DNA from: Convolutriloba macropyga
Lineage: Eukaryota
Length of the DNA stretch: 64,000 nucleotides
Assembly (NCBI RefSeq): GCF_964194025.1
Contig: NC_134479.1
Coordinates: forward strand, 11,346,001 to 11,410,000
Reading direction: 5' to 3'
This document shows, piece after piece, positions 2,828 through 52,302 of this stretch. Numbering within the stretch: the first letter of the stretch is position 1; each line of letters starts with the position of its first letter. Under the pieces are notes generated by a model, which did no database searches, was not told the DNA's origin, and saw nothing but the letters and a program-made list of their open reading frames with translations. Both the position numbers and the translations under genes were made by a program.

Positions 2828-2842
2828 TCATATATATATATT
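1835..2842. repeat. degenerate (TTA)n/(TA)n microsatellite with N run
   Basis: Direct inspection. Confidence 0.95.
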
Positions 2843-6269: not shown

Positions 6270-6303
<34 letters not shown>

Positions 6304-6363
6304 GTCATTACTAAATTATTATTGTTATTTTTATTGTCATTATTACTATTATTCTTATTATTG

Positions 6364-6401
<38 letters not shown>

Positions 6402-6741: not shown

Positions 6742-6816
<75 letters not shown>

Positions 6817-6829
6817 CTATCATTATTAT
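5718..6829. repeat. degenerate (TTA)n microsatellite with N runs
   Basis: Direct inspection; largely duplicates 1835-2720. Confidence 0.95.
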
Positions 6830-6904
6830 GGTGGTGGACGGATCCACCCGGAGAGCCTGCAACCAAGTATTTTACCTAATAATATGAACACTGATAAACT
6901 ATAT

Positions 6905-6943
<39 letters not shown>

Positions 6944-7193
6944 CTTATGGAACGAACTCTTACTCTTTTGTGAATATGTTAGATTGATTAGTATCACCAA
7001 TAGGTGACAACGTATTGTACGCTAGAGTGACAGCTTTGTTGAACATTCATTATAAAGTGCAAACTGGTACTTCGTCTAAATCACGCAGAGCGTGAAAGCT
7101 GAAGCGCAGCTCTGCCTTTAGCAAATTGAAAGATATTTGCTAATTCAAGTTTCGCACTTGCTCTTTTGTGATCAAACCTAATTCAATACGACA
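6830..7193 (+). repeat. 5' LTR, Gypsy family 2 (internal (TA)n)
   Basis: GTGGTGGACGGATCC...ACGACA then PBS TGGCGCAGTCAGCA; repeated at 11495 and 13892. Confidence 0.85.
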
Positions 7194-11478: not shown

Positions 11479-11494
11479 AAAAGACGAGGGGAAG
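11479..11494 (+). promoter_or_regulatory. polypurine tract
   Basis: AAAAGACGAGGGGAAG immediately before TGTGGTGG LTR start. Confidence 0.8.
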
Positions 11495-11816
11495 TGTGGT
11501 GGACGGATCCACCTGGAGAGCCTGTAACCAAGTATCTTACCTAATAATATGAACATTGATAAACTATATTACATATATATATTCCTTATGGAACGAACTC
11601 TTACTCTTTTGTGGATATGTTAGATTGATTAGTATCACCTATAGGTGACAACGTATTGTACGCTTGAGTGACAGCTTTGTTAAAAATTCATTATAAAGTG
11701 CCAACTGGTATTTCGTCTAAATCACGCAGAGCGTGAAAGCTGAAGCGCAGTTCTGCCTTTAGCAAATTGAAAGATAGTTGCTAATTCAAGTTTCGCACTT
11801 GCTCTTTTGTGATCAA
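11495..11816 (+). repeat. 3' LTR, Gypsy family 2 (end hidden by Ns)
   Basis: Matches 6830-7175. Confidence 0.9.
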
Positions 11817-11999
11817 NNNNNNNNNNNNNNNNNNNNNNNNNNNNNNNNNNNNNNNNNNNNNNNNNNNNNNNNNNNNNNNNNNNNNNNNNNNNNNNNNNNN
11901 NNNNNNNNNNNNNNNNNNNNNNNNNNNNNNNNNNNNNNNNNNNNNNNNNNNNNNNNNNNNNNNNNNNNNNNNNNNNNNNNNNNNNNNNNNNNNNNNNNN

Positions 12000-12615
12000 T
12001 ATTTTTGTTTTTAGTGTTATTACTATTTTCGCTATTTTTTTTTTTCATTTTTATTATTTTATTAATGTTACTTACGTTATTATTATTATTATTAATATTA
12101 TTATTATTATGATAACTGTTATTATTATTATGTTATTATAATTAATATTATNNNNNNNNNNNNNNNNNNNNNNNNNNNNNNNNNNNNNNNNNNNNNNNNN
12201 NNNNNNNNNNNNNNNNNNNNNNNNNNNNNNNNNNNNNNNNNNNNNNNNNNNNNNNNNNNNNNNNNNNNNNNNNNNNNNNNNNNNNNNNNNNNNNNNNNNN
12301 NNNNNNNNNNNNNNNNNNNNNNNNNNNNNNNNNNNNNNNNNNNNNNNNNNNNNNNNNNNNNNNCATTATTATTGTTTTTAGTGTTATTACTATTTTCGCT
12401 ATTTTTATTTTTGTTTTTTTCATTATTATTATTTTATTAATGTTACTTACGTTAGTAGTATTTTTTTAACTGCTTTTATTGTTATTATTATCATTTTTAT
12501 TATTATTATTATTATTTAATATTATTATTATCATTATAATTTTAATAATAATATTAATAAAAATAATAATAGTTATCATTATTGTTTTTATTTTATTACT
12601 TCTATCAGTTTTATT

Positions 12616-12646
<31 letters not shown>

Positions 12647-12845
12647 CTATTATTATTATTATTATTGTTATTATTAATATTAGTATTAGTAATATTATAA
12701 TTATTATGATTTTTAATAGTTTTGTTTTGTTTATTTTTAATACTATTTTTTATTATTATTGCTAATGTTTTTTTAAATTTTATTTTTATTTTTATTGCTC
12801 TTATTATTAAATTTATTAATAATATTTTCACTTTTATTATTTTAT
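12000..12845. repeat. AT-rich (TTA)n low-complexity tract
   Basis: Direct inspection. Confidence 0.9.
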
Positions 12846-13042
12846 GGCGGTAAATTTTTATTACATTCTTATGTATAGATTTCTGTATTAAGTGATTTAT
12901 AAAATTGATACCAGATAGAGCTAGGCCATTCACTTTACAAATAGATTGTGTTCTCTGATGGCTTTGAGATAGTCTTAGTTGAAGTGGTCTCTGACGAAAA
13001 AAGTCAAAAAAATTTAGCCAAAGACAGTAATTGAATTAACAA

Positions 13043-13969
13043 TGGACTCATCCAACCAAGAACCCCAAGCAACCAAAAAGAAAAGGGATGGCCCCAACCA
13101 AACGCAAATATAAACTTAACAAAGATTTCGACCAACGCTCAAAGTAGGCAGCTCTCGCACAAACAAAACTTGAAAAGGCAAGGCAATGACAAAACAAAGT
13201 AAACTCACCACGCATCCAACTGGATACTAAAAGGCTACACAAGGACAAATCAGTAGAAGTAATAAACCTTTCATCAGACTCGTCCCAAGGAAGTCCTTTG
13301 CAAATCTTCACCTCCGACAACCCCAATGCGTTTTTGTACGCACCACCAAACAATAGAGACAACAGCCAAACGAAAAGAGATGCAAAAATCGACAAGATCA
13401 TAAGAAGAATCACCAACTCACCCAAGAAGACACCAGTAGAACCCGAAATCGAACAAATCATAACAATCACCCCAGCATCAACATCAGCACCAATTGGAAA
13501 CAACACAAAGACACTACAACACATTGACAACAAACAACCACCACAACCAACGGGTAATGACAACAAAGACACACCACAACAGGACATCGATAAACAAACA
13601 ACGAAACCAACTGGCTCAGACAACAACTCACAACAACATAGCAACATATAACAAATTTCGACACTACCAAACGACAACACACAAACACTTCAGCAAATAA
13701 TTAAAGGACTAACAGAAACACCAGAGGAAAGTCAAGACACGAACACAGACAGAAAAAACATACACAGGGTGGATCAAGAGGGACGATTATTCAGGATCAA
13801 GCTCCATATCATCACTAAACACTGCGGACATAGAAGCGCCGCGCTGAACAAGATTTTTGACTAAATCAAAAATCAAAGAGACGAGGGGAAGTGTGGTGGA
13901 CGGATCCACCTGGAGAGCTTGTAACCAAGTATCTTACCTAATAATATGAAACACTGATAAACTATATTA

Positions 13970-14027
<58 letters not shown>

Positions 14028-14276
14028 TATATATATATTCCTTATGGAACGAACTCTTACTCTTTTGTGGGTATGTTAGATTGATTAGTATCACCTATAG
14101 GTGACAACGTATTGTACGCTTGAGTGACAGCTTTGTTAAACACTCATTATAAAGTGCCAACTGGTACTTCGTCTAAATCACGCAGAGCGTGAAAGCTGAA
14201 GCGCAGTTCTGCCTTTAGCAAATTCAAAGATAGTTGCTAATTCAAGTTTCGCACTTGCTCTTTAGTGATCAAACCT
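13043..14276 (+). mobile_element. duplicated 3' end + PPT + 3' LTR (from 13892) of Gypsy family 2
   Basis: Matches 10650-11816; part of a tandem segmental duplication. Confidence 0.9.
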
Positions 14277-14555
14277 NNNNNNNNNNNNNNNNNNNNNNNN
14301 NNNNNNNNNNNNNNNNNNNNNNNNNNNNNNNNNNNNNNNNNNNNNNNNNNNNNNNNNNNNNNNNNNNNNNNNNNNNNNNNNNNNNNNNNNNNNNNNNNNN
14401 NNNNNNNNNNNNNNNNNNNNNNNNNNNNNNNNNNNNNNNNNNNNNNNNNNNNNNNNNNNNNNNNNNNNNNNNNNNNNNNNNNNNNNNNNNNNNNNNNNNN
14501 NNNNNNNNNNNNNNNNNNNNNNNNNNNNNNNNNNNNNNNNNNNNNNNNNNNNNNN

Positions 14556-14812
14556 ATTATTGTTTTTTATTGTTATTACTATTTTCGCTATTTTTTTTTG
14601 TTTTTTTTTTCATTATTATTTTTTTATTAATGTTTCTTCCGTTAGTAGTATTTTTATTATAACTGCTATTATAGTTATTATTATCATTTTAATTATTATT
14701 ATTATTATTATTTAATATTATTATTTTTATCATTATAATTTTAATAATAATATTAATAAAAATAATAATAAATATCATTATCGTTTTTATTTTTATTACT
14801 TCTATTAATATT

Positions 14813-14843
<31 letters not shown>

Positions 14844-14844
14844 C

Positions 14845-14881
<37 letters not shown>

Positions 14882-15065
14882 TTTATTGTTATTAATAATA
14901 TTAGTTTTAGTAATATTATAATTATTATGATTTTTAATAGTTTTGTTTTGTTTATTTTTAATACTATTTTTTAATATTATTGCTAATGTTTTTTCAATTT
15001 TATTTTTATTTTTATTGCTCTTATTATTAAATTTATTAATAATATTTTCACTTTTATTATTTTAT
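14556..15065. repeat. AT-rich (TTA)n low-complexity tract (duplicate of ~12365-12845)
   Basis: Direct inspection. Confidence 0.9.
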
Positions 15066-16322: not shown

Positions 16323-16522
16323 NNNNNNNNNNNNNNNNNNNNNNNNNNNNNNNNNNNNNNNNNNNNNNNNNNNNNNNNNNNNNNNNNNNNNNNNNNNNNN
16401 NNNNNNNNNNNNNNNNNNNNNNNNNNNNNNNNNNNNNNNNNNNNNNNNNNNNNNNNNNNNNNNNNNNNNNNNNNNNNNNNNNNNNNNNNNNNNNNNNNNN
16501 NNNNNNNNNNNNNNNNNNNNNN
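16323..16522. other. assembly gap (exactly 200 N)
   Basis: Round-number N run that cuts an H4 gene. Confidence 0.85.
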
Positions 16523-27218: not shown

Positions 27219-27711
27219 GCTCTGAGCAGCTCTACCTCAACACAAACAGGCCTTTTTAAAGGCCACCAAACCTTCTAAAGTTACCTTACTAGCTAGTAAG
27301 CTCAAGCTATGTAGCTAGCAAGCTCAAAACAAGCTAATTGTCTTAATTTAAGCTTGAGTTGAGGTATCTGAACTTTGTTCAAAAACTCTTATTTCTTTCA
27401 GCTAATCAGAGTTCGAGAAACTGTTAGGCTATTTGGGAGCTCTTTTCTCGCACTCTGATTGGCTGAGAGCTCAATATACTGTTAGGCTACTTTGGGAGCT
27501 CTTTTCTCGCACTCTGATTGGCTGAGAGCTCAATATACTGTTAGGCTACTTTGGGAGCTCTTTTCTCGCACTGTGATTGGCTAAGCTCGAATATGGGCTT
27601 TTGAACGACTTTTTATATTTAGGTAGCAAAAAAGTTGGGTGCCCCAACCCAACCCAACACAACTACAACTACAACTAGTAAAAGAGGAGCAGCAGAGGAC
27701 AGCAAGAGGAA

Positions 27712-29433: not shown

Positions 29434-30689
29434 AGAAGCTTCTAGCTTGCTACTTCAACACCGGCCTTTTTAAAGGCCACCAAACCTTCGAAGTTACCTT
29501 ACTGGCTTCAGCTTACTACCTAGCAAGCTCAAATTAAGCTAAATGTCTTATTTTAAGCTCGAATTGAGGTATTTGAACTTCATTCAAAAACCCTTATTTG
29601 GTTCAGCCAATCAGATTGCGAGAAAGTCTTAGGCTATTTGGGAGCTCTTTTCTCGCACTCTGATTGGCTGAGAGCTCAATATACTGTTAGGCTACTTTGG
29701 GAGCTCTTTTCTCGCACTGTGATTGGCTGAAAAAGTGACGTGATATGACGTGGAAGCCGGCGTGCCTACGTGGCTGTTTTCTCACACTGTGGTTGGCTAA
29801 GCTCAATATGGGCTTTTGAACGACTTTTTATATTTAGGTAGCAAAAAAGTTGGGTGCCCCAACCCAACCCAAGACGACAGATGAGGAGCTAGATGAAGAG
29901 TACGCAGTATCACACTTTCTCAGCAACAACGGTAAGCCGACTTAGTTGTGTCTCTTAGTCTCTTTTCCAAGAGGCGAGGCTTTAGTTGCGCGCCACCCCC
30001 CCTCCCAAAGGCCCCTGCCAGAACTGCGCTGCCAATCTACACTACGCGGGAGTAGAGGCTGAGTCTACGCGGGACAACCCGGCCACCATAGCACTTACTC
30101 CTGAGCTAGCTCGCACTGAGTCAAGAGTACCTGGTGCTATAAGTTAGAGTGTTGGCGGTACCACTTGCACTTCGGTTCCGTCGAGAGCACAAGCCCAGGT
30201 TTAGACACCAAAGGGTTGGCGTACTCTCACGAACGCAACACTCGCCACCCCGAGCATCCTTTTCAGGAAGCTCGAGCTAGCTCTAGGACCTGCAAGCTCC
30301 CTGGTGTAACCGCTCCAAGAAGAATTCCCTCGAACGCTGAGACTAGTTGGAGGCAAAGGAATCCCGGTGTTAGCCGTCCTGAGCCGAAAACTTGAGGCTA
30401 GCACTACAGTCTATAGATAGGCGGTAAGCTGCTAGTCTCACTCTCAGTGAGAGGGGGACCGAGCAAGACGTCGCGAGGACGAGCAAAGAAAGTGCTAGAC
30501 GTCGCGAGACGCCGCGAGACGCCGCGATCCCAGACGAAGAGGGTGCAAGAAGACAGCTCTGCCCACATAGTGGGTGAAGATAAGAGAAGCACCACCGCAC
30601 TCTGCTTGTCCAGCCTGAACCAATAAGCTCCTGTGTTGGGACATCGAACATCGCCTCTCTCCCTTTCTGTCATCGAGTCACGAGCCCCT

Positions 30690-31110
30690 TTTTAACTGTA
30701 CAAAGATCAAGCTCTTCTACCAACTCGAAGAAGAGAACTCTCATCTCGAGCTCTTAGACTGTACAAACATCCAACTCGAGCTTCATAGACAACAACTCCA
30801 TTTTTATCCCTGTACAAAGACGAACCCTGTATAAACTCTCATCTCGAGCTTTTAGACTGTACAAACCTCCAACTCGAGCTTTTAGACAACAACTCTACTT
30901 TTACCTCTGTACAAAGACGAACCCTGTACAAACTCTCATTTCGAGCTTTTAGACAACTCCACTTTTACCTCTGTACAAAGACGAACCCTGTACAAACTCT
31001 CATCTCGAGCTTTTAGATTGTACAAACTTACAACTCGAGCTTTCATCAACCCCTGCTTCAAGCTTTTACCCCTGTACAAACATCAATTTCGAGCTTTTTA
31101 CAACTCTAGT
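30690..31110 (+). repeat. family-A-specific degenerate tandem repeats in 5' UTR
   Basis: Recurring CTGTACAAA and CTCGAGCTTTTAGAC; also ~47795-48215. Confidence 0.8.
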
Positions 31111-31129
31111 CTTTCAAGCCAACTCAGTA

Positions 31130-32338
31130 ATGTCTCTTCGCAATCCTTTCTCTCTTAATGCGAAGATCTTCCACCCAGCTGCCTCAACAGTGAACTGTTC
31201 TGCTCCAAGTCTTGACATATCTCAAGCCTCCAACCTCGACCAAAGTCTAGCAACGAGCCACAACCAAAGCCAGAGAAAACGCAAAGCAACTGATGGACCC
31301 CGAACCAGCTCCAAGATTAGAAAGAGGCAACCTGAGCAACATATTAAAGTAGTCTACTTCACATTTGAACATGAGACACCGAGCCACAAAGAATTCAACC
31401 AGCAGCTGAAAAACTTAACTGGCAACCCAAACTACGGAGAAGTGAGGCGAAGTCAGAACGGAAAAGGCTACTCGATGAAACCACGAACTATCGAGATAGC
31501 AAAGATGATTACTGCAAACAAAGTCAAGGAAGCATTCGCAAACTACCAAGTCAAACTAAGCACTGCTGCCTCCAACCCGGTGAAACCGAGCTTCGTCATA
31601 ACAAGTGTAGACCAAGACATCGATCCTGAAGACGTTAAAAGTGAGCTGCAAAGTCAGAACATAGAGGCAACATCAGTACATAGAATAACAAGTCGTGCAA
31701 CCAACCAACCTACGAGGCTCATAAGAGTGTTTACAAACACAGAGACAACTGCCAGGAATGCTGTTGACAACGGTGTCAAAATTTTCAATCAGAGAAAGAG
31801 ATGTGAGCGATCGAGACTAGAGCCCTCGGTAGTACAATGCTTCAAATGCCTCCAATATGACCACAAGGCGAAGGACTGCCCAAACAATCTCAAATGTAGA
31901 CGATGTGGCGGAGAGCATGTTATAAGAGAATGCGATGTTGCTCCAGAAAGTGCCAAATGCTCTAACTGCGGAGAGAGTCACTCTGCAAATTATCGAGGCT
32001 GCTCCAAGTACCAAGAAGCACGAGCCAGCAGCTATGCTGATGCAGTGAAGAGCAAGGCCCACTCTAGTCCACAAAGCTCTCTGAACAAGATCGAAGAAGT
32101 GGCTGAACTAAACAACAAGATCAATCTGGCGGAGCAAAGAGAACAAAACAGCATGACAATTATTGCAGCCATGATACAATGCTTCTTCGACTCCCCAAAG
32201 CAGAAGATAAACATCCTCCAGGCTCTAAACGTTGTCTCTGGTCATAACTACAGCCAAGTTAAATATGATGCAAAGATTAGAGAATTCAAGCATCAATTCG
32301 CAAGCCAACGAACATCAACTCAACATGGCAAACCTTAA
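31130..32338 (+). CDS. LINE ORF1 nucleic-acid-binding protein, three CCHC knuckles (78-bp in-frame deletion vs copy A2)
   Basis: CFKCLQYDHKAKDC, CRRCGGEHVIREC, CSNCGESHSANYRGC. Confidence 0.9.
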   Translation: MSLRNPFSLNAKIFHPAASTVNCSAPSLDISQASNLDQSLATSHNQSQRKRKATDGPRTSSKIRKRQPEQHIKVVYFTFEHETPSHKEFNQQLKNLTGNPNYGEVRRSQNGKGYSMKPRTIEIAKMITANKVKEAFANYQVKLSTAASNPVKPSFVITSVDQDIDPEDVKSELQSQNIEATSVHRITSRATNQPTRLIRVFTNTETTARNAVDNGVKIFNQRKRCERSRLEPSVVQCFKCLQYDHKAKDCPNNLKCRRCGGEHVIRECDVAPESAKCSNCGESHSANYRGCSKYQEARASSYADAVKSKAHSSPQSSLNKIEEVAELNNKINLAEQREQNSMTIIAAMIQCFFDSPKQKINILQALNVVSGHNYSQVKYDAKIREFKHQFASQRTSTQHGKP

Positions 32339-34988
32339 AGTAGCTCAACTGAACGTCAGAGGCTTGAGACCAAAGCTCAGAGTTATTGAACCAGTTTTAT
32401 TAGACAAGGGCATTCATGTAGCCTGTTTTAACGAGACAAAAACGAAGCAGCCTCCTCATCTGCGAAATTTTATCTTAGCTGCAAGCATTAACGACAATAT
32501 ACATGGCTCAGCCATATATATAAGAGAGGGACTAAACTACTCACTGCTAGACAACAAATTCGTCAAAAACAACTCTAAAACCAACGAGAAGCTGCATATA
32601 AGACTCAAAGAATCTGATGTTGACATTACTCTGATATACTGTTCACCCGGCAATGAGATTGAAGCAAGTCACTTGGTCAGGCACAATACAAAATGCATAG
32701 TGGTGGGAGATTTTAATCTCCAGAACATAAACATCAACCCTATGTCCACAAAGAGCGATGCAACAGGTCGAGTCGTTGAGGAACTTCTGGATGAAGAATA
32801 CATACTTCTGAATAACGACTTCAAAACGCATGAGAAGGGATCCGTTTTAGACCTGCACCTGTGCTCTAAGCCTTTGGCAAAACACTTTGTGAAGTTCGAA
32901 ATATTTGAAGAGACTCTGAGCGACCACTATATGACCATCAGCGAATTTAACCTGCGAGCTCCAAAATCTAGATCACTGTGGCCAAATTGGAAATGCTTCA
33001 GAGAGAAAGTGAGTTGCTACAGAAGCCAGTATGCAGATTTGAACAGCAGAGCAGAAAGCATAGCAACCCACATTAAGACGTGTTACGAGAGCAGCCTCAA
33101 AGAAGCTAAGCCAATACAAAACAAAGAAATAGTCGCGCTCACCAGAAAGAAACACCAGCTGCAGAGAAAAGTCAGAAAGCTGAGAAGACTGGGCATGAGG
33201 GGATACTCAGAGGAGAGATACCTCACATCAGAGCTCAATAGAACATCGAGAAAGCTCTCACAATCACTAATACAAGAAAGGCAGAATCAAGAACTGAAGA
33301 TGGTGGCCAGCATGAACTCAAATGGGAAGGGCATCGATTTCTGGAAGGCCTACAAGAAACTCACGCAATCTAGCAAGAGCAATGCAAACCAGCTTAAAAT
33401 TAGCACGCAGGAGGCAGCAGATAAATTTGCTGAGAAGCTGAAACAGAATATGAGAATGCATGAGGCTGTAACTCAGGAAGCTAAAGAGATTGAAGATCTA
33501 GTTGAAACATGCGTGAACGAGAATGAAATAGCACAGTTTCGCCTGCCCCCTAACCACCATGAAACTACAGTCGAGGTTGAACAACTGAGAAGCATCATTA
33601 AAGGGAGGAAAAACACAGCTCCAGGACCTGACGGAATATCGTACAAAATATTGAAACAGCTACCAGACGCTATAATGAAAGAACTCAGTGACATAATACA
33701 AAGCTCTCTAAAAGATGGAATTGTGCCTGACTGCTGGAAAAGATCCAATGTCTCTATGCTGCCCAAGCCAAATAAAGACCACTCTGATCTCAAGAATTAC
33801 AGACCTCTCTCCCTCACAAGTTGCATCGGTAAATTGTGCGAAGTTGTTACCAAGGAGCACTTAAACAAGCACTGTGAAAGTAACGATATCTTCACCAACG
33901 CGCAAGGCGCATACAGAGCAGGTCGCTCTACAACTGATAATTTACTCTGCTTAAGCGAACATATTTTCAGTGAAGCCCTCTGGAAGCAGCCAACCGCAGC
34001 AGCTTTTCTCGATGTTCAGCAGGCATTCGATGCGGTGTGGCATAAAGGACTAATCTATAAAATGCAGCTAAACAAAGTGCCAGAGTGGATCATAAAATGG
34101 ACCGTAAGCTATCTCAAAGACCGAGAGCTGACTGTAATATACCAACAGGCTGTGGCCAACAGCTTTAAACCAAGTGCAGGAGTACCACAGGGCAGCGTAA
34201 TCAGCCCTACACTGTTCAACATCTATGTCAGCAGTCCAGAAGTCTCGAATGCAAAAGTCTCTCAATATGCAGATGATATTGCAATATACACGAGTGGCAG
34301 AAACTGTAGAGCAGCTACTTTCAAACTACAGAAGGCTCTCAACTCACTGGACATGTGGTGCAACCTTTGGAAAATCAAAATTAATCCCGAGAAAACAAAC
34401 TTCATGCTATTGACCAGAAATAGAGACAAAAGCCACCACCATCTCAAACTGCAAGACGTAATTCTAAATCCATCGAAGTCGTCTACTTTTCTCGGAGTTG
34501 AGTTGAATGATAATCTAACTTGGGCGGCGCAGATCAGGAAGATTGAAAACAAGATGTTTGGGAGAATAAATGGACTCATGATGCTGAAAGCGAAAGGTGT
34601 CAACTCTAAGTGCCTCATATTACTATATAGAGCAACGATACGACCAATTATGGAGTATGCTTCGCCGGCATGGGCGAATGCTCCCAAGCACAGCATCATG
34701 AGACTTCAAAGAAAACAAAACAAAGCCATAAGAGTAGCATTAGATCTACCCAGATGGACGTCGTCAGATGAGCTACATAACGCAGCAAACCTTCCCAGAG
34801 TGAGCACACTTCTAGCCCAGAGAAATATACAATACCTCAAGAGAGCTTCTAGCAACAACGCAGCAATAAGAGAACTGATCCAAGATCAACTTACTAAAAC
34901 GACCACTGAACTCCAATACATTACACCTGTACAGACGATACTGTTTGAAACAGCGAAAAATAGACTCGACAATATGGGCAGTCCCTAG
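32325..34988 (+). CDS. LINE ORF2: APE endonuclease + reverse transcriptase (887 aa)
   Basis: QLNVRG, NETK, GDFN, LDL, SDH; APGPDGI, NYRPLSLTS, LDVQQAFD, GVPQGS, QYADD; ATG 32325 chosen by homology with family B start. Confidence 0.95.
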   Translation: MANLKVAQLNVRGLRPKLRVIEPVLLDKGIHVACFNETKTKQPPHLRNFILAASINDNIHGSAIYIREGLNYSLLDNKFVKNNSKTNEKLHIRLKESDVDITLIYCSPGNEIEASHLVRHNTKCIVVGDFNLQNININPMSTKSDATGRVVEELLDEEYILLNNDFKTHEKGSVLDLHLCSKPLAKHFVKFEIFEETLSDHYMTISEFNLRAPKSRSLWPNWKCFREKVSCYRSQYADLNSRAESIATHIKTCYESSLKEAKPIQNKEIVALTRKKHQLQRKVRKLRRLGMRGYSEERYLTSELNRTSRKLSQSLIQERQNQELKMVASMNSNGKGIDFWKAYKKLTQSSKSNANQLKISTQEAADKFAEKLKQNMRMHEAVTQEAKEIEDLVETCVNENEIAQFRLPPNHHETTVEVEQLRSIIKGRKNTAPGPDGISYKILKQLPDAIMKELSDIIQSSLKDGIVPDCWKRSNVSMLPKPNKDHSDLKNYRPLSLTSCIGKLCEVVTKEHLNKHCESNDIFTNAQGAYRAGRSTTDNLLCLSEHIFSEALWKQPTAAAFLDVQQAFDAVWHKGLIYKMQLNKVPEWIIKWTVSYLKDRELTVIYQQAVANSFKPSAGVPQGSVISPTLFNIYVSSPEVSNAKVSQYADDIAIYTSGRNCRAATFKLQKALNSLDMWCNLWKIKINPEKTNFMLLTRNRDKSHHHLKLQDVILNPSKSSTFLGVELNDNLTWAAQIRKIENKMFGRINGLMMLKAKGVNSKCLILLYRATIRPIMEYASPAWANAPKHSIMRLQRKQNKAIRVALDLPRWTSSDELHNAANLPRVSTLLAQRNIQYLKRASSNNAAIRELIQDQLTKTTTELQYITPVQTILFETAKNRLDNMGSP

Positions 34989-35424
34989 GACTTTTTATCG
35001 CAATTTCAATTCAATCAATCTTTTCTTTTAATCGACTTTCTATCTCTTTCTGATGGCCTGTGTGTTTTATTGAGCAACGGACATATGGAACATATACACA
35101 GCATATACACAACAACACTCATCATCTTCTTCTTCTCTTCTTCACTTTTTGGTGGCCTAATTTCAATTCTGACTCTGACTCTTTCTCTTTGCAACACGAG
35201 CAACAATAGACGTCTAGTTGGGTTCCATGACTGAGAGCACGATCTGAGAAAGAACACACGAAGACAAGAGACGGGTTTGAAAGGCTCAATCTCAGCGAGC
35301 CAAAGAAACTCAAGTCCCCCCCTCGGGAGACCTACAGCCTCGGTACAATGGGTGCCCCAACCCAACCCAACACAACTACAACTACAACTAGTAAAAGAGG
35401 AGCAGCAGAGGACAGCAAGAGGAA

Positions 35425-35793
35425 ATGGCACCCAAAGTGAGCGGCAAAGCAGTGAAGAAGGCAGGCAAGGCACAGAAGAAGCCCTCTGGTGACAAGAAGA
35501 AGAAAAAGAAGAGGAGAGAGACCTACTCCCTCTACATCTACAAGGTGCTGAAGCAGGTCCACCCCGACACCGGCATCTCCTCCAAAGCTATGTCGATCAT
35601 GAACTCGTTCGTGAACGATATCTTTGAGAGGATAGCTGGAGAAGCTTCGAGACTGGCCCACTACAACAAGCGATCAACCATCTCAAGCCGGGAGATCCAG
35701 ACTGCAGTGAGGCTCTTGCTACCAGGAGAGTTGGCCAAGCATGCTGTGAGCGAGGGAACCAAAGCTGTGACCAAATACACCAGCTCCAAGTAA
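35425..35793 (+). CDS. H2B: histone H2B (separated from its promoter by element A1)
   Basis: Intact ORF + stem-loop. Confidence 0.95.
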
Positions 35794-36712
35794 AGTCCGT
35801 TGCTACTTAAGCAACAACACACAGGCCTTTTTAAAGGCCACCAAACCTTTTGAAGTTAACTTAATAGCTGCAATGAAGCTCAAAACAAGCTAACTTGAAG
35901 CTAAAAACCTTATTTTCAAAGTTGCCGGTACCCTTATTCTATGTATTTTCGAGCTATAGCTAGCTCGAGCTCAACTTAGCTAGCTTGAGCTTGAGCTAGC
36001 TAGTTTGAGCTTGAGCTAGCTAGTGTGAGCTTCAGCTAGCTAGTGTGAGCTTGAGCTAGCTAGCTCGAGCTTGAGCTTGATAGCTTGAGCTTGAGCTAGC
36101 TGGCTTGAGCTTGCTATCTTGAGCTTGAGCTTGAGCTTGCTAGCTTGAGCTTGCTAGCTTGAGCTTGCCAGCTTGAGCTTGAGCTTGCTGGCCTGAGCTT
36201 GAGCTTGCTAGCTGCAGTTAGAGCTAACTTGAGCTCTCTGCCAATCAGAGTTCGAGAAAAGCGCTCCCAATTAGCCTAACAGTGGCAGCCAATCAGAGTG
36301 CGAGAAAAGCGCTCCCAAATAGCCTAACAGTGGCAGCCAATCAGAGAGCTAGAAAATCAAAATTGCATAGAATATAAGTACCTGCAGCTCTGAGCAGAGG
36401 TGAAGGTCCGAGCAGGCTTGATCGGGCATAGGCGAAGGTCCGAGCAGGCTTGCTCGGACCTTCGCCTATGCCCGAGCAAGCCTGCTGGGACCTTCACCGC
36501 TGCTCAGAGCTGCAGGTACTTATATTCTATGCAGTTTTGATTTTCTAGCTCTCTGATTGGCTGCCACTGTTAGGCTATTTGGGAGCGCTTTTCTCGCACT
36601 CTGATTGGCTTAGCAACATAAGGGTTTTTGGAACGCATTTTTAACTTAGGTAGCCATATGTGAGTCTGGGTAACAACCATTTACAACAGACGAAGAAACA
36701 AGACGAAGAGAG

Positions 36713-37114: not shown

Positions 37115-38400
37115 AGAAGCTTCTAGCTTGCTACTTCAACACCGGCCTTTTTAAAGGCCACCAAACCTTCGAAGTTACCTTACTGGCTTCAGCTTACTAC
37201 CTAGCAAGCTCAAATTAAGCTAAATGTCTTATTTTAAGCTCGAATTGAGGTATTTGAACTTCATTCAAAAACCCTTATTTGGTTCAGCCAATCAGATTGC
37301 GAGAAAGTGTTAGGCTATTTGGGAGCTCTTTTCTCGCACTCTGATTGGCTGAGAGCTCAATATACTGTTAGGCTACTTTGGGAGCTCTTTTCTCGCACTG
37401 TGATTGGCTGAAAAAGTGACGTGATATGACGTGGAAGCCGGCGTGCCTACGTGGCTGTTTTCTCACACTGTGGTTGGCTAAGCTCAATATGGGCTTTTGA
37501 ACGACTTTTTATATTTAGGTAGCAAAAAAGTTGGGTGCCCCAACCCAACCCAATTGCATTTACAATTGGAACAACCATTTACAAGACGACAGATGAGGAG
37601 CTAGATGAAGAGTTCGCAGTATAACACTTTCTCAGCAACGACGATAAGCCGACTTAGTTGTGTCTCTTAGTCTCTTTTCCAAGAGGCGAGGCTTTAGTTC
37701 CGCGCCACCCCCCTTCCCAAAGGCCCCTGCCAGAACTGCGCTGCCAATCTACACTACGCGGGAGTAGAGGCTGAGTCTACGCGGGACGACCCGGGCACCA
37801 AAGCACTTACTCCTGAGCTAGCTCGCACTAAGTCAAGAGTACCTGGTGGTATAATTAGAGTGTTGGCGGTACCACTTGCACTTCGGTTCCGTCGAGAGCA
37901 CAAGCCCAGGTTTAGACACCAAAGGGTTGGCGTACTCTCACGAACGCAACACTCGCCACCCCGAGCATCCTTTTCAGGAAGCTCGAGCTAGCTCAGGACC
38001 TGCAAGCTCCCTGGTGTACCCCCGTACCAAGAAGAATTCCCTCGAACACTAAGCCCTAGTCTGAAGCAAAGGAATCCCGGTGTTAGCCGTCCTGAGCTGA
38101 GGGCTTGATTCTAGCACTACGGCCTATAGATAGGAGGTAAGCTGCTAGTTTCACGCTTAGTGAGAGGGGGACCGAGCAAGACGCCGCGAGGACGACCTAA
38201 GAGAGTGCTAGACGCCACGAGACGCCGCGATCCCCGACGAAGAGAGTGCAAGACGCCGCGATCCCAGACGAAGAGGGTGCAAGAAGACAACTCTGCCCAC
38301 ATAGTGGGTGAAGACCAGAAGCACCGAAGACCAGAAGCAAGTACCTCTCTCCCTAGCCTCTGACCCCTCAATACGCGAGTCCTTCTGCTGAATACTCCCA

Positions 38401-39675
38401 ATGGCACACCGAAACCCCCTCGCTCGACCCTTCTTCCCCAACAGCTCGATGAACAACAACGCAGTGAACTGCTCAGATGCCAACCAGAGCCTAAATATGA
38501 CCGCCTTGACCAACATTAGCTCAGTCAGTCAACAAGGAACCAAGAGGAAAGCCCAAGACAGTGGTCCCCGAACAAGCTCCAAAGTCCGAAGAACCCAAAG
38601 TGACAGACCCAAAGTGATCTACTTCTCCTTTGACACACCAGTACCGAGCCTCAAAGACTTCAACCTCAAGCTGATTGCCCTGACCAACTGCCAGAACTAT
38701 GGAGAACTAAGGAAGTCCAAGAACGGCAAAGGCTTCTCCATCAAGCCAAAGACCACTGACATAGCCAAGACAATTACCCCGAGCAAAGTTACCACAGCCT
38801 TCCCCAACAGCAAAGTGAGACTGAGCACCATGACCACCAACAACTCAAAGCCAAGCTTCGTTATCACTAACATCGATCTCGATGTACAAACTGATGACAT
38901 CAAGACCGAGCTACAGAACCAACACATTGACGCTGAGACTGTGCACAGAATTACTAGCAGAGCCACCAACAACCCAACCCGACTAGTTAGAGTGTTCACC
39001 TCCTCTGAAGCCAACGCAAGAACAGCGGTAGAAAATGGGGTCTCTATCTTCAACCAACGCAAGAGATGTGAGAAATCAAGACAAGAGCCTCAAGTGATCC
39101 AATGTTTCAAGTGCCTCGAGTTTGGACACTGGAGCCATGAATGCTGTAACAGCGTAAAGTGTCGAAGATGCGGAGGCGAGCATCTCGTAAAAGACTGCGC
39201 ACAAACTGAACAAGAGACTAAGTGCCCAAACTGTGGAGAGAACCACTCCTCCAACTACCGAGGATGTGCAAAGTACCAGGAGGCAAAGTCAATCAGCTAT
39301 GCTCAAGCAGTCAAGAAGAGCCAACCAGAAACCTCTACCGCTTTCACGAAAATAGAGAAGATGTTAGAAACAATGAATGAGAGACTCAGCAACATCGAAG
39401 ACAAACTAACGCAGAGAGTAAAGACTTTAGAAGACCAAACAGCCCAGCTGACCATAAAGACAAGTTCAATCGAAAACAGCCAACTGAACAACTTCATGAC
39501 TCTCGCAGCCCTCATACAGTGCACACTAGACTCCTCACAAAAGAAGATTAACATCATGCAAGCTCTAAACTTCATCACAGGACAGACAATCAGCAATTCT
39601 CAGTTTGACGCGAAAGTGAAAGAATTCAAACAATACTTCGCCAGCCACAAAATCACATCTCAACATGGCAGATAA
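38401..39675 (+). CDS. LINE ORF1, three CCHC knuckles + predicted coiled coil
   Basis: CFKCLEFGHWSHEC, CRRCGGEHLVKDC, CPNCGENHSSNYRGC. Confidence 0.92.
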   Translation: MAHRNPLARPFFPNSSMNNNAVNCSDANQSLNMTALTNISSVSQQGTKRKAQDSGPRTSSKVRRTQSDRPKVIYFSFDTPVPSLKDFNLKLIALTNCQNYGELRKSKNGKGFSIKPKTTDIAKTITPSKVTTAFPNSKVRLSTMTTNNSKPSFVITNIDLDVQTDDIKTELQNQHIDAETVHRITSRATNNPTRLVRVFTSSEANARTAVENGVSIFNQRKRCEKSRQEPQVIQCFKCLEFGHWSHECCNSVKCRRCGGEHLVKDCAQTEQETKCPNCGENHSSNYRGCAKYQEAKSISYAQAVKKSQPETSTAFTKIEKMLETMNERLSNIEDKLTQRVKTLEDQTAQLTIKTSSIENSQLNNFMTLAALIQCTLDSSQKKINIMQALNFITGQTISNSQFDAKVKEFKQYFASHKITSQHGR

Positions 39676-42337
39676 CTTGACAGTTCTACAACTCAATGTT
39701 AGAGGGATGAGATCCCAACTTAGACTACTCGACACTCTACTAAGTGACAAAGGCGCTCATGTTGCCTGCTTCAATGAAACCAAGACAAAACAGCCGCCAA
39801 GACTCAAAGACTTCATCTTAGCTGCAAGCATTGACGACAACAAACATGGCTCAGCCATCTATGTTAGACGCGGACTCAGCTTCAAGCTCATCAACATCAA
39901 AGTTGTAAAATCAGACTCCAAAACCAACGAGATGCTACACATCAGACTCACGGACTCCAACATCGACATCATACTAATCTACTGCTCTCCTGACTTAGCC
40001 ATCGAACCAACCCACCTCCAATACTCAAATAGAAGAACTCTCATACTGGGTGACTTCAACATCAAATGTCCATACATTAACCCCAAATCATACAGCTTCA
40101 ATGCAACTGGACGAACAGTAGAGGAACGACTAGATGACGGCCTTGTGCTGCTGAATGACGACAGTGCAACGCACAAGAGTGGCTCAATCCTAGATCTCCA
40201 GCTCAGCACGATTGACCTCGCCTCGGACCTTGCATCTTTTCACACTGCAGACGGAACTTTAAGTGATCATCTAATGACGATAAGCCAATTTAACATCAAT
40301 GCTCCGAAACCCTACTATCTAAGACCAGATTGGAAGCAGTTCAAGAGGAAAGTGGCGGAATTCACCAACAGCACAGATGAACTAGATGAGAAGGCTAAAG
40401 AGCTGGCAACTCACATCAAGCGCTGCTATGACGACTGCCTAAGACCTCAACGACGAAGCTCCAACAAAGAAATAGCCAATCTAATCAAGACCAAGCATCG
40501 AATACAGAGGAGAGTCAGAAAACTCAGACGAAATGGACTAAGGGGTGATATGGACGAAAGAGAACTGACAGCTGAACTAAACAGAGTCTCAAAACAACTG
40601 ACCAGAACAATTAAGCTTGAGAAGCAACAACAAGAGAATAAACTGATTGAACAGCTCAATGACGACAAAAACTGCCAGAACTTCTGGAAGGCCTTCCACA
40701 GACTCAACAAAGACAATCAGCACAGCACAAATCGACTCAAGATGACTACACAAGAGGCTGCAAACAGCTTCGCAAACTCCCTCCAGCAGACCATGGTGAC
40801 GCACAGACCCGAGACAACTGAAGCGAGCGATCATCAAGAAGAAGTTGAGAGAAATATTGACGAAGCTGCGATAGACGCCTATGAAACACCAAGAGAACAC
40901 TGGCAAACTGATTTACGACCACAACTGCTTAGACGACTGATTTCTGAGAGAAAGAACACAGCCCCAGGCGATGACCAAGTTTCTTATAAGATCCTGAAAC
41001 AACTGCCAGACAACATCATAGAGAACCTCTGCGAACTCATTCAAGAATCACTCAAACGAGGCAAGATACCAACGTGCTGGAAGAAGGCCAAAGTCTGCAT
41101 GCTCCCTAAACCAGGCAAGGATCACACGAACATCAAGAATTACAGACCCCTCTCTTTGACAAGCTGCATTGGCAAACTAGGCGAAATTATCGTAAAGGAG
41201 CATCTGACCAAACACTGCGAGGACTTAAACGTATTCGGAAACACCCAAGGTGCATACAGAGCGAAGAGATCAACTGTTGACAATCTGCTATGCCTGACTC
41301 AACACGCCTTCAGCGAAGCTCTCTGGAAACGACCAACTGCAGCAGTCTTTCTTGACGTACAACAAGCATTTGATGCAGTGTGGCACAAGGGACTACTCTA
41401 CAGACTCCAGGAGAACAAAGTTCCAATGTGGATCATCAAATGGACCAAAGACTACCTCAAGAACAGAGAACTGAAAGTTGTGTACCAGCAAGCTGTAGCA
41501 GAGAGCTTCGTCCCAAGTGCCGGTGTCCCTCAAGGAGGAGTTATAAGTCCAGTTCTTTTCAACATCTATGTCAGCAAACCCGAAGTAGCAACAGCCAATG
41601 TTTCCCAGTATGCAGATGATATAGCACTCTACACGACCAACGCAACCTGCAAAGCAGCCACTCTAAGACTACAAAGAGCACTCGACACACTTGACCACTG
41701 GTGCAACCTGTGGAAGATCAAACTCAATCCTGACAAGACGCACTTCATGCTCATCACTCGTCTGAAAGACAAACAACAACTACTGACCCTCAAAGGAGCA
41801 CAATTGAAGACAACAAAGAAAACAACCTTTTTAGGAGCAGAAATATCAGACAGCTTGACTTGGACTGAGCACATCAACAAAGTTGAACAGAAAGTTTTCG
41901 CCAGGACAAACGGACTCAAAATACTCAAAGCTAAAGGAATCAGCTCTAAAAGCCTAATCAAACTTTACAAGATGACTATCAGACCAATCATGGAGTACGC
42001 CTCACCAGCCTGGGCCAATGCTTCGAACTCACTCTTACAAAGACTACAGATACTACAAAACAGAGCACTGAAGACAGCACTAGATCTACCTCCTTGGACA
42101 TCCAGGACAGAAGTACACAGCAAAGCTAACATACCGACCATGACTGAATACTTGACGAGACGCAACATCAACTACCTGAAACAAGCATCGAAGTACAACT
42201 CCTCTATAAGAGAACTCATCCAAGATGAACTGAAGACAGTACAAACCGATAGCAACCTCAGGACTCCGATACAGACGATACTGTTCCAAACAGCACTTGA
42301 GCGGCTCTCGATTTCATCAACTGACGTTCCAAATTAA
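39665..42337 (+). CDS. LINE ORF2: APE endonuclease + reverse transcriptase (890 aa)
   Basis: QLNVRG, NETK, GDFN, SDH, NYRPLSLTS, GVPQGG, QYADD. Confidence 0.95.
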   Translation: MADNLTVLQLNVRGMRSQLRLLDTLLSDKGAHVACFNETKTKQPPRLKDFILAASIDDNKHGSAIYVRRGLSFKLINIKVVKSDSKTNEMLHIRLTDSNIDIILIYCSPDLAIEPTHLQYSNRRTLILGDFNIKCPYINPKSYSFNATGRTVEERLDDGLVLLNDDSATHKSGSILDLQLSTIDLASDLASFHTADGTLSDHLMTISQFNINAPKPYYLRPDWKQFKRKVAEFTNSTDELDEKAKELATHIKRCYDDCLRPQRRSSNKEIANLIKTKHRIQRRVRKLRRNGLRGDMDERELTAELNRVSKQLTRTIKLEKQQQENKLIEQLNDDKNCQNFWKAFHRLNKDNQHSTNRLKMTTQEAANSFANSLQQTMVTHRPETTEASDHQEEVERNIDEAAIDAYETPREHWQTDLRPQLLRRLISERKNTAPGDDQVSYKILKQLPDNIIENLCELIQESLKRGKIPTCWKKAKVCMLPKPGKDHTNIKNYRPLSLTSCIGKLGEIIVKEHLTKHCEDLNVFGNTQGAYRAKRSTVDNLLCLTQHAFSEALWKRPTAAVFLDVQQAFDAVWHKGLLYRLQENKVPMWIIKWTKDYLKNRELKVVYQQAVAESFVPSAGVPQGGVISPVLFNIYVSKPEVATANVSQYADDIALYTTNATCKAATLRLQRALDTLDHWCNLWKIKLNPDKTHFMLITRLKDKQQLLTLKGAQLKTTKKTTFLGAEISDSLTWTEHINKVEQKVFARTNGLKILKAKGISSKSLIKLYKMTIRPIMEYASPAWANASNSLLQRLQILQNRALKTALDLPPWTSRTEVHSKANIPTMTEYLTRRNINYLKQASKYNSSIRELIQDELKTVQTDSNLRTPIQTILFQTALERLSISSTDVPN

Positions 42338-42680
42338 TGGACAAACCTACAAATCTTTACAAACTCAATTCAGCTTTTTCTTTATGACTTCATGACAATC
42401 TTCTCTTTTGGTGGCCTTAGATGACAAAGCAATGCAAAGTGCAAATCGACAACTCCTTCGACATCTCTCTTCCACAACGAACCTGACGACCAGACGCAAA
42501 ACCATGTACAGACCAAACATTGACTACAACTGCAAAGCAAGACGCGAGTTTACAAGGCTTCTTGAAAAGAAGCCAAAGAAGCTCAAGACAACCCCCTTCA
42601 CACACGGGTGCCCCAACCCAACCCAACACAACTACAACTACAACTAGTAAAAGAGGAGCAGCAGAGGACAGCAAGAGGAA

Positions 42681-46537: not shown

Positions 46538-48226
46538 AGAAGCTTCTAGCTTGCTACTTCAACACCGGCCTTTTTAAAGGCCACCAAACCTTCGAAGTTA
46601 CCTTACTGGCTTCAGCTTACTACCTAGCAAGCTCAAATTAAGCTAAATGTCTTATTTTAAGCTCGAATTGAGGTATTTGAACTTCATTCAAAAACCCTTA
46701 TTTGGTTCAGCCAATCAGATTGCGAGAAAGTGTTAGGCTATTTGGGAGCTCTTTTCTCGCACTCTGATTGGCTGAGAGCTCAATATACTGTTAGGCTACT
46801 TTGGGAGCTCTTTTCTCGCACTGTGATTGGCTGAAAAAGTGACGTGATATGACGTGGAAGCCGGCGTGCCTACGTGGCTGTTTTCTCACACTGTGGTTGG
46901 CTAAGCTCAATATGGGCTTTTGAACGACTTTTTATATTTAGGTAGCAAAAAAGTTGGGTGCCCCAACCCAACCCAACCCAAGACGACAGATGAGGAGCTA
47001 GATGAAGAGTACGCAGTATCACACTTTCTCAGCAACAACGATAAGCCGACTTAGTTATATCTCTTAGTCTCTTTTCCAAGAGGCGAGGCTTTAGTTGCGC
47101 GCCACCCCCCCTCCCAAAGGCCCCTGCCAGAACTGCGCTGCCAATCTACACTACGCGGGAGTTGAGGCTGAGTCTACGCGGGACAACCCGGCCACCATAG
47201 CACTTACTCCTGAGCTAGCTCGCACTGAGTCAAGAGTACCTGGTGCTATAAGTTAGAGTGTTGGCGGTACCACTTGCACTTCGGTTCCGTCGAGAGCACA
47301 AGCCCAGGTTTAGACACCAAAGGGTTGGCGTACTCTCACGAACGCAACACTCGCCACCCCGAGCATCCTTTTCAGGAAGCTCGAGCTAGCTCTAGGACCT
47401 GCAAGCTCCCTGGTGTAACCGCTCCAAGAAGAATTCCCTCGAACGCTGAGACTAGTTGGAGGCAAAGGAATCCCGGTGTTAGCCGTCCTGAGCCGAAAAC
47501 TTGAGGCTAGCACTACAGTCTATAGATAGGCGGTAAGCTGCTAGTCTCACTCTCAGTGAGAGGGGGACCGAGCAAGACGTCGCGAGGACGAGCAAAGAAA
47601 GTGCTAGACGTCGCGAGACGCCGCGAGACGCCGCAATCCCAGACGAAGAGGGTGCAAGAAGACAACTCTGCCCACATAGTGGGTGAAGATAAGAGAAGCA
47701 CCACCGCACTCTGCTTGTCCAGCCTGAACCAATAAGCTCCTGTGTTGGGACATTGAACATCGCCTCTCTCCCTTTCAGTCATCGAGTCACGAGCCCCTTT
47801 TTAACTGTACAAAGATCAAGCTCTTCTACCAACTCGAAGAAGAGAACTCTCATCTCGAGCTCTTAGACTGTACAAACATCCAACTCGAGCTTCATAGACA
47901 ACAACTCCATTTTTACCTCTGTACAAAGACGAACCCTGTATAAACTCTCATCTCGAGCTTTTAGACTGTACAAACCTCCAACTCGAGCTTTTAGACAACA
48001 ACTCTACTTTTACCTCTGTACAAAGACGAACCCTGTACAAACTCTCATTTCGAGCTTTTAGACAACTCCACTTTTACCTCTGTACAAAGACGAACCCTGT
48101 ACAAACTCTCATCTCGAGCTTTTAGACTGTACAAACTTACAACTCGAGCTTTCATCAACCCCTGCTTCAAGCTTTTACCCCTGTACAAACATCAATTTCG
48201 AGCTTTTTACAACTCTAGTCTTTCAA

Positions 48227-49275
48227 CCTGAGCAACATATTAAAGTAGTCTACTTCACATTTGAACATGAAACACCGAGCCACAAAGAATTCAACCAGCA
48301 GCTGAAAAACTTAACTGGCAACCCGAACTACGGAGAAGTGAGGCGAAGTCAGAACGGAAAAGGCTACTCGATGAAACCAAGAACTATCGAGATAGCAAAG
48401 ATGATTACTGCAAACAAAGTCAAGGAAGCATTCGCAAACTACCAAGTCAAACTAAGCACTGCTGCCTCCAACCCGGTGAAACCGAGCTTCGTCATAACAA
48501 GTGTAGACCAAGACATCGATCCTGAGGACGTTAAAAGTGAGCTGCAAAGTCAGAACATAGAGGCAACATCAGTACATAGAATAACAAGTCGTGCAACCAA
48601 CCAACCTACGAGGCTCATAAGAGTGTTTACAAACACAGAGACAACTGCCAGGAATGCTGTTGACAACGGTGTCAAAATTTTCAATCAGAGAAAGAGATGT
48701 GCAAATGCTTCCAATATGACCACAAGGCGAAGGACTGCCCGAACAATCTCAAATGTAGACGATGTGGCGGAGAGCATGTTATAAGAGAATGCGATGTTGC
48801 TCCAGAAAGTGCCAAATGCTCTAACTGCGGAGAGAGTCACTCTGCAAATTATCGAGGCTGCTCCAAGTACCAAGAAGCACGAGCCAGCAGCTATGCTGAT
48901 GCAGTGAAGAGCAAGGCCCACTCTAGTCCACAAAGCTCTCTGAACAAGATCGAAGAAGTCCTCAGCAACATCGACAAGAGGCTCGAGAAAATAGAGAGCA
49001 ACCTCACTGAAAGGGTCCAAATACTTGAGAACAAAGTGGCTGAACTAAACAACAAGATCAATCTGGCGGAGCAAAGAGAACAAAACAGCATGACAATTAT
49101 TGCAGCCATGATACAATGCTTCTTCGACTCCCCAAAGCAGAAGATAAACATCCTCCAGGCTCTAAACGTTGTCTCTGGTCATAACTACAGCCAAGTTAAA
49201 TATGATGCAAAGATTAGAGAATTCAAGCATCAATTCGCAAGCCAACGATCATCAACTCATCATGGCAAACCTTAA
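48227..49275 (+). pseudogene. ORF1 remnant (start deleted, frameshift at ~48702)
   Basis: 213-bp and ~37-bp deletions vs A1. Confidence 0.85.
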
Positions 49276-51866: not shown

Positions 51867-52302
51867 GACTTTTTATCGCAATTTCAATTCAATCAATCTT
51901 TTCTTTTAATCGACTTTCTATCTCTTTCTGATGGCCTGTGTGTTTTATGGAGCAACGGACATATGGAACATATACACAACATATACACAACAACACTCAT
52001 CATCTTCTTCTTCTCTTCTTCACTTTTTGGTGGCCTAATCTCAATTCTGACTCTGCGTCTTTCTCTTTGCAACACGAGCAACGCAAGACGTCTAGTTGGG
52101 TTCCATGACTGAGAGCACGATCTGAGAAAGAACAAACGAAGACAAGAGACGGGTTTGAAAGGCTCAATCTCAGCGAGCCAAAGAAATTCAAGTCCCCCCC
52201 TTGGGAGACTTACAGCCTCGGTACAATGGGTGCCCCAACCCAACCCAACACAACTACAACTACTACTAGTAAAAGAGGAGCAGCAGAGGACAGCAAGAGG
52301 AA

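Follow-up and report, generated by a model that had tools for sequence, protein, structure and literature searches.

Histone array and its occupied H2B leaders

The 64,000-nucleotide stretch of the Convolutriloba macropyga genome analyzed here (NC_134479.1, positions 11,346,001 to 11,410,000 of the forward strand; hereafter the window) contains a tandem replication-type histone array with H2B, H3, H4 and H2A genes, all on the + strand, which extends from ~16.5 kb to the window end, is variable in unit composition and adjoins an N gap at 16323-16522. Nine H2B leaders with promoters are present in the window; five are undisturbed, while four are split by retrotransposon insertions of 5.0-5.5 kb. 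In the five empty units the leader reads ...TTTATATTTAGGTAGCAAAAAAGTTGGGTGCCCCAACCCAACCCAACACAACTAC...ATG, with target sites at 27637-27657 (+ strand) and at 17165, 20393, 24409 and 54380. The four insertions occupy one and the same leader position in the same orientation, starting at 29873 (A1), 37554 (B1), 46977 (A2) and 58711 (B2), and the leader continues beyond the insertion point with CACAACTAC.... Each is flanked by a 21-bp duplication of the target, GGGTGCCCCAACCCAACCCAA, of which the upstream side of B2 keeps 16 bp only. The recurrence of insertion at a single nucleotide is not attributable to chance, since two families that are only ~66% identical in their coding regions hit the same site, and the different 5' junctions of B1 and B2 identify these two as independent events. 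The elements are thus site-specific, displaying recurrent insertion at one position and in fixed orientation, by two families, in four of the nine H2B leaders.

The geometry of the target was defined in the unit occupied by A1. The upstream promoter region (29600-29810, + strand) comprises forward and inverted CCAAT modules and a variant 76-nt module containing TGACGTGATATGACGTGG. It is followed by the TATA box TATATTTA at 29829-29836 (+ strand), part of TTTATATTTA at 29827-29836, which now faces A1. The H2B transcription start is predicted at A 29861, 32 nt past the first T of TATATTTA and at a C-A step, a location at which initiation directed by a TATA box is expected. The upstream copy of the 21-bp duplication (29852-29872, + strand) lies 23-43 nt after the first TATA T, in agreement with an earlier note on this DNA, which had placed the target ~20-40 bp after a TATA-like box and past CCAAT repeats. 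The duplication spans -9 to +12 relative to the predicted start, and 29861-29872 constitutes a 12-nt leader piece, AACCCAACCCAA, that reaches from the predicted start to the insertion point. The same note had located the insertion at the likely transcription start; more exactly, it lies ~12 nt past the predicted start. Its further proposal of a CAACC-rich motif common to the H3, H4 and H2A leaders holds for H3 and H4, which contain CAACCCAAC, whereas the H2A leader instead begins AACAACCATTTACAAC.

Directly 3' of the A1 end (35349) lies the downstream copy of the duplication (35350-35370, + strand), followed by the H2B open reading frame (ORF) at 35425-35793 (+ strand), whose protein is identical to that of unoccupied units, and by a histone 3' stem-loop (Rfam RF00032, 35819-35865, + strand). 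As the earlier note had read it, the whole H2B promoter faces the element and the downstream H2B, with its ATG at 35425, retains of its former upstream sequence the 21-bp copy only, the promoter part of which amounts to 9 nt. No TATA-like sequence was identified in the 59 nt preceding the downstream duplication in either family.

A promoter variant was observed at 29728-29805, 37409-37486, 46832-46909, 54256-54333 and 58571-58648, where the 76-nt module replaces one CCAAT module. This module holds TGACGTGATATGACGTGG and CCTACGTGGC, with two TGACGT motifs, and the proximal ATTGG is there changed to GTTGG. The variant promoter is found in all four occupied units and in one empty unit, while none of the four canonical-promoter units is occupied (Fisher p = 0.048), an association confounded by physical neighborhood. 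All six genomic copies of the variant module map to C12:11.375-11.414 Mb, and between -60 and +12 the core promoter of the variant units shows hardly any change.

Structure of the two element families

The insertions are retrotransposons that lack long terminal repeats (non-LTR elements), or long interspersed nuclear elements (LINEs), of the apurinic/apyrimidinic endonuclease (APE) type, as established by their APE and reverse transcriptase (RT) domains and their target-site duplications, the latter in keeping with integration by target-primed reverse transcription. Element A1 (family A, 29873-35349, + strand, 5477 bp) starts with GACGACAG..., has both ORFs open and carries no poly(A) tail. 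Its 5' untranslated region (UTR, 29873-31129) precedes ORF1 (31130-32338, + strand), which encodes a PRE_C2HC domain and three CCHC knuckles, and ORF2 (32325-34988, + strand), which encodes the APE endonuclease and an RT with YADD; the 3' UTR covers 34989-35349. Element A2, which together with its duplications (46956-46976 and 52228-52248) extends over 46956-52248 on the + strand, has a body at 46982-52227 with both ORFs interrupted. Apart from internal deletions it is 99% identical to A1, and it has one extra CCCAA at 46977-46981.

Element B1 (family B, 37585-42605, + strand) also has both ORFs open (ORF1, 38401-39675; ORF2, 39665-42337). Between its upstream target duplication (37533-37553, + strand) and its body lies a 31-nt 5' extension (37554-37584, + strand) ending in AACAACCATTTACAA, the start of the H2A leader; the downstream duplication occupies 42606-42626. 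In B2 (58695-63795, + strand) the upstream target is kept only to GGGTGCCCCAACCCAA (58695-58710), followed by a 5' extension, CAACCATTTACAACAGCAA (58711-58729), that matches 16 nt of the H2A leader. The B2 body (58730-63774), with ORF2 interrupted, is bounded by the downstream target copy at 63775-63795. Although the coding regions of the two families are only ~66% identical, the first ~720 nt of their 5' UTRs are ~91% identical (29873-30600 versus 37585-38330), which implies either inter-family recombination or strong constraint, as might be imposed by a promoter, by an element acting in translation or by a packaging signal.

The Pfam families Exo_endo_phos_2 and RVT_1 match ORF2 of both families, YADD is present, and the endonuclease catalytic residues N10, E37, D129, N131, D200 and H201 are conserved, so that endonuclease and RT are intact. 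The predicted endonuclease model (pLDDT, predicted local distance difference test, of 90) has as its best fold matches the L1, TRAS1 and R1Bm endonucleases, at 16-19% identity each. The fold search leaves the L1, TRAS1 and R1 endonucleases unseparated, a PDB sequence search matched RT domains only and the protein atlas returned generic LINE clusters, none of which supplies a named-clade label; the CCHC and PRE_C2HC domains of ORF1 presumably point to the I/Jockey/R1 group. The closest protein relative (P0001) is 46% identical and derives from the assembly of another organism, where it is 5'-truncated and without histone context.

A search of both strands of 29700-35900 revealed no ribozyme or other Rfam family in the element at E<=1, the histone stem-loop being the only Rfam match, and AATAAA is absent from the final ~780 nt of A1 and from the final ~1.9 kb of B1. 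A common sequence, TTTTGGTGGCCT, is located ~200 nt from the 3' end of each of the four elements (35147-35158, 42406-42417, 52025-52036 and 63579-63590). The sequence TTTGGTGGCCT is the reverse complement of AGGCCACCAAA, which comprises the histone stem-loop's 3' arm and the adjoining ACCAAA, and it could base-pair with this region in a read-through RNA or in histone pre-mRNAs.

Histone leader pieces and the origin of the element RNA

A search of the 1.18-Gb genome with the 5' UTR common to both families recovered ~30 more places, spread over many chromosomes; 18 of these were fetched with both flanks and their junctions mapped. Leader pieces of histone genes are present on all 16 copies outside H2B with assessable 5' ends. 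In family A, the five full-length or 5'-complete copies outside H2B (L031, L032, L039, L047 and a copy nested in L034, in a satellite on C2) all carry (A)ACCCAACCCAA or a longer CCCAA run right before the element start, with AACCCAACCCAA or a slightly longer CCCAA run sitting between the upstream flank and the canonical start. All pieces share the same 5' boundary, A 29861/29862, and L039 has one CCCAA more, matching an A2-like donor. The four dispersed copies have their own local, non-histone duplications of 14-22 bp, namely GGGAGCAATATATAAACTCATT (L032), TGCAAAAG(A/G)GTAAGA (L031), TCAACTTGGACTTT (L039) and GCTCTTT(C/T)TGTTTG (L047), while the duplication of the nested copy in L034 was not definable; where 3' flanks are available, they lack the leader piece. 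Because of these local duplications and 3' flanks, the 12-nt piece must have been part of the reverse-transcribed RNA, and the presence on the copies of the exact segment of the H2B leader from predicted start to insertion point indicates that this RNA began at the H2B start site. An extra G directly before the piece in three of the five copies fits, if weakly, with copying of a cap. An internal deletion in L047 does not derive from a spliced RNA, as its boundaries are not GT..AG.

An origin of the pieces at integration, through a jump of the RT onto histone mRNAs or through microhomology with CCCAA-like targets, was considered and appears very improbable. Untidy 5' junctions with extra non-templated or duplicated stretches (L032, L042 and B1) and microhomologies such as CAA would agree with it, and histone mRNAs are abundant in S phase. 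When an RT jumps from the 5' end of one template, however, it usually resumes at the acceptor's 3' end, which should yield 3' parts or whole mRNAs rather than the first 12-17 nt. The off-array junction CCCAA|GACGACAG moreover reproduces the genomic H2B-element junction exactly, the same exact 29-mer, AACCCAACCCAAGACGACAGATGAGGAGC, being found at six genomic places, just two of which are H2B sites, and the lack of CCCAA in the 3' flanks shows that the piece is not target sequence.

Family B carries a piece of a second histone leader. Ten copies outside the array (L033-L037, L040-L043 and L046), as well as B1 and B2 in the window, contain all or part of AACAACCATTTACAA, a sequence with which the H2A leader begins, without any mismatch. 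The core promoters of H2A and H2B are homologous and share TTAGGTAGC, from which the H2A piece starts at a distance of 26 nt and the H2B piece at 27 nt. Counted from GGGT, 21 nt of the H2A leader correspond to GGGTAACAACCATTTACAACA, the same length as the H2B duplication, and the B2 extension, composed of CAACCATTTACAACA followed by GCAAGACG, fits an earlier insertion in an H2A leader with the same cut spacing. In L037 and L046 the pieces are stacked in the order H2A piece, H2B piece, element. An eleventh and older family-B copy (L044:1481-1530, G000:C4:28.93 Mb), ~90% identical to B1, displays a nearly complete, diverged H2A-type leader (35 of 41 positions). It is without the 19 nt CAGATGAGGAGCTAGATGA of the canonical copies, its own flank is an H4-promoter-like CCAAT module, and the end of its H2A-type leader resembles the canonical element start, CAAGACGA...AGAG. 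The local duplications of copies outside the histone array measure 13-22 bp. The simplest reading of these junctions is one of serial rounds, in which an element residing behind a histone start site would be transcribed from it and carry the leader along. A head-to-tail pair of family-B copies is present at L035 (G000:C7:10.03 Mb); its second member begins directly at the final bases of the other, ~10 nt short of where the canonical element starts.

Taken together, the junctions make it probable that the element RNA is made from the H2B promoter and starts at H2B +1. Transcription from the cell-cycle-regulated histone promoter had been proposed in the earlier note, and for the position of the RNA start the off-array leader pieces support it indirectly but strongly. 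In the mechanism that we favor, two sister APE-type LINE families would home to the H2B 5' leader, where the endonuclease, judging from the junctions, would nick the bottom strand just before GGGT, the top strand being opened 21 bp further on. The element would thereby land ~12 nt after the H2B start site and 44 nt after the TATA box, in gene orientation. Polymerase recruited by the intact TATA and CCAAT promoter would then initiate at +1 (A 29861) and run into the element, yielding an RNA that begins with AACCCAACCCAA followed by GACGACAG... and serves as the transposition template. The short host leader would be copied into each new insertion, off-target insertions included, and at a fresh H2B target it may pair with the CCCAA repeats during formation of the 5' junction, which would explain the extra CCCAA of A2. 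Family B would record an equivalent process at the leader of H2A. The H2B gene downstream of the insertion loses its promoter and is probably silent, or is expressed only as the tail of a read-through RNA ending at the histone stem-loop. Such read-through is plausible because neither an Rfam ribozyme nor an AATAAA near the element ends was found and the H2B stem-loop is the only downstream RNA family; retention of the leader on transposed copies argues against 5' cleavage.

Several observations weigh against transcription from the H2B promoter. The evidence for it comes from DNA, and the read runs compared with the stretch behave as DNA. The leader piece is by now passed on as part of the element, and an internal promoter firing at the first inherited nucleotide would leave the same pattern; the ~91% identity of ~720 nt of 5' UTR, against ~66% in the ORFs, would suit such a promoter. 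Among ~28 element 3' ends in the assembly, in which the array is clearly incomplete, only 4 are in H2B, at least 8 in a satellite at C2:84.2 Mb and the rest dispersed. Occupied H2A leaders, sought as donors for family B, number 0 of 10 in the assembly, and no copy with a family-B body has the H2B piece 5' of the H2A piece, as would be expected from transcription of B at H2B sites; the donors of family B would therefore be H2A-resident copies that are unassembled, or B starts from its inherited piece. Finally, the GTTGG variant promoter of all occupied units might be weak or silenced.

Several of these points bear on one alternative, in which an internal promoter of jockey or L1 type in the conserved 5' UTR starts at element nucleotide 1 anywhere in the genome. 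The pieces AACCCAACCCAA and AACAACCATTTACAA would then be relics, captured once and since inherited, which perhaps function as initiator or provide a homology arm when the 5' junction forms, and the upstream H2B promoter would be irrelevant or additive. The 5' UTR identity, a leader piece on every copy wherever it is located, the majority of assembled copies lying outside H2B and the missing H2B-then-H2A order despite the residence of B1 and B2 in H2B sites all speak for it. This alternative nevertheless still requires that, originally, histone start sites were used for transcription in two rounds or more. It leaves unexplained the H2A-then-H2B stacks of L037 and L046 and the near-whole H2A-type leader of L044, and the 5' boundaries of the pieces coincide with the TATA-predicted start of the matching histone gene. 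It is accordingly regarded as unlikely, and initiation at the histone start site is retained as the preferred explanation.

A bolder version of histone-promoter use, offered only tentatively and as doubtful, is that of a LINE living on the whole replication-dependent histone system. Its RNA would begin at the capped +1 of H2B or H2A, would lack a poly(A) signal and tail of its own, would read through to the histone stem-loop and would be made and stabilized in S phase, when DNA is open to integration, while its 5' UTR would have been built by serial leader capture (H2A-type, H2B, then H2A again). If true, serial leader capture would provide a promoter-less site-specific element with a visible route to a portable initiator and to escape from its target.

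Genomic distribution, related systems and significance

Twelve H2B promoter-leader sites are present in the assembly, of which 4 are occupied and 8 empty. The array is probably much larger than assembled, because an N gap adjoins it and because, in contigs of low-coverage DNA runs, histone-promoter words are 2-3 orders of magnitude deeper than element words, although these depths are not copy numbers. Empty-site contigs are present in the same runs, and together these data indicate that most array units are unoccupied. Among four read runs, which cover intergenic promoter DNA and behave as DNA, the element was found in three samples of organism A and in none of organism B. Copy trees have the shape of a star in which copies residing in H2B are intermingled with dispersed ones at 96-99% identity, and they suggest a few masters and recent activity.

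The satellite at G000:C2:84.21-84.30 Mb (L034, L040, L045 and L046) contains histone-promoter-like modules with inverted CCAAT boxes, ATATGGGATTTTGAAAGG and TTTATAGCT, and no histone genes in its fetched parts. It hosts both families, some copies being nested or in tandem. Insertions here display a 21-bp duplication, GGGGTTGTTGAAAGTATCAGC, at a position that, measured from the TATA-like box, is homologous to that of the H2B target, and recognition may therefore involve the promoter core rather than the CCCAA repeats. The sequence TTGAAAGTATCA, found before some satellite copies, was considered as a third captured leader and rejected, as it is the satellite's own inverted-repeat flank. Another locus, L038 (G000:C16:18.424-18.434 Mb), has an element 5' end behind a diverged H2B-like promoter (TTTTTTAAATAGGTAGCGAAAAAGTTGTTTGCCCCAACCCAAG) and, after it, tandem, internally deleted element fragments with a period of ~1.4 kb, with no histone gene within the fetched 10 kb.

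Histone ORFs between 43000 and 64000 of the window carry scattered substitutions, such as H4 K to T (45078..), H2A V to G (46136..), H2B N to K (52303..) and H2B H to L (54455..), and one H2A is 5'-truncated (53647..); this fits a decaying array edge at which insertions accumulate. The occupied units might then be dead ends, silenced like R2-inserted units of ribosomal DNA (rDNA), and promoter capture would be history rather than current biology. Such units are usually inactivated in the case of R2 (PMC8789037), the occupied H2B units cluster where histone ORFs have amino-acid changes and where the variant promoter has a mutated proximal CCAAT box, and A2 and B2 have broken ORFs. Against this, both ORFs of A1 and B1 are open, A1 and A2 are 99% identical, off-array copies 98% identical to B1 denote recent activity, and the core promoter is almost unchanged, which together render the dead-end explanation quite improbable. 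At the other end of the window (1-15000) lie several copies and fragments of LTR-type retrotransposons on both strands (gag with zinc knuckle, protease, RT and integrase fragments), with N gaps and low-complexity, AT-rich DNA between them.

Site-specific LINEs are known for rRNA, small nuclear RNA (snRNA), spliced-leader and tRNA genes and for simple repeats. The closest functional analogues of the present elements appear to be SLACS and CZAR in spliced-leader genes, the RNA start being deduced here from the leader pieces. SLACS and CZAR insert between nt 11 and 12 of the mini-exon, or spliced-leader exon (PMC5814959), and for SLACS a transcription start at the +1 of the host gene that it interrupts has been reported (PMC3447711). 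Like SLACS, CZAR and CRE, the H2B elements occupy one position a few nt into the transcribed region of a tandem gene with its own promoter, here after nt 12 of the predicted leader. Those elements, however, have a restriction-like endonuclease and belong to an early-branching clade, whereas APE endonuclease and a gag-like ORF1 with CCHC knuckles are found here; in addition, the host is a protein-coding histone gene in an animal-type array, and leader pieces are carried off-target and stacked.

The analogy with R1/R2 co-transcription drawn in the earlier note is a loose one. R2, which lacks its own promoter and depends on that of the host, is transcribed as part of the pre-rRNA and is freed by a ribozyme, and R1 copies also occur outside rDNA (PMC8789037). 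Common features are site-specific non-LTR insertion, the lack of a poly(A) tail, a partly occupied tandem multigene family and, as for R1, off-target copies. In contrast to R2, which lies deep in an RNA polymerase I precursor and has a self-cleaving ribozyme, a restriction-like endonuclease and a single ORF, the H2B elements lie 12 nt from a TATA-type start of a presumably RNA polymerase II promoter, retain the leader, have no 5' ribozyme among the Rfam families searched and combine an APE endonuclease with two ORFs. Target-specific LINE families have been reported in the early-branched, Tx1 and R1 groups (PMC4640811). Those of the Tx1 and R1 clades, directed to snRNA and 5S rRNA genes, microsatellites and telomeric repeats, share APE and RT domains and sequence-specific integration into multicopy sequence, but histone genes are not among their targets. 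A full-text literature search revealed no LINE family that targets histone genes. The H2B elements would represent a new variant, a known strategy applied to a new class of target, as promoter parasitism is not previously described for histone genes in the literature searched.

A protein-coding, cell-cycle-regulated histone gene would constitute a new kind of safe harbor for a LINE and a new case of a borrowed host polymerase II promoter. The system also offers a natural model for the tolerance and purging of insertions in tandem gene arrays outside rDNA, and its endonuclease, judging from the junctions, cuts the two strands at a defined site with a stagger of 21 bp. The off-array leader pieces would document, for each transposing RNA, the promoter from which it was made, such that the ways in which promoter-less elements become transcribed, and in which internal promoters arise, may be read from genome sequence.

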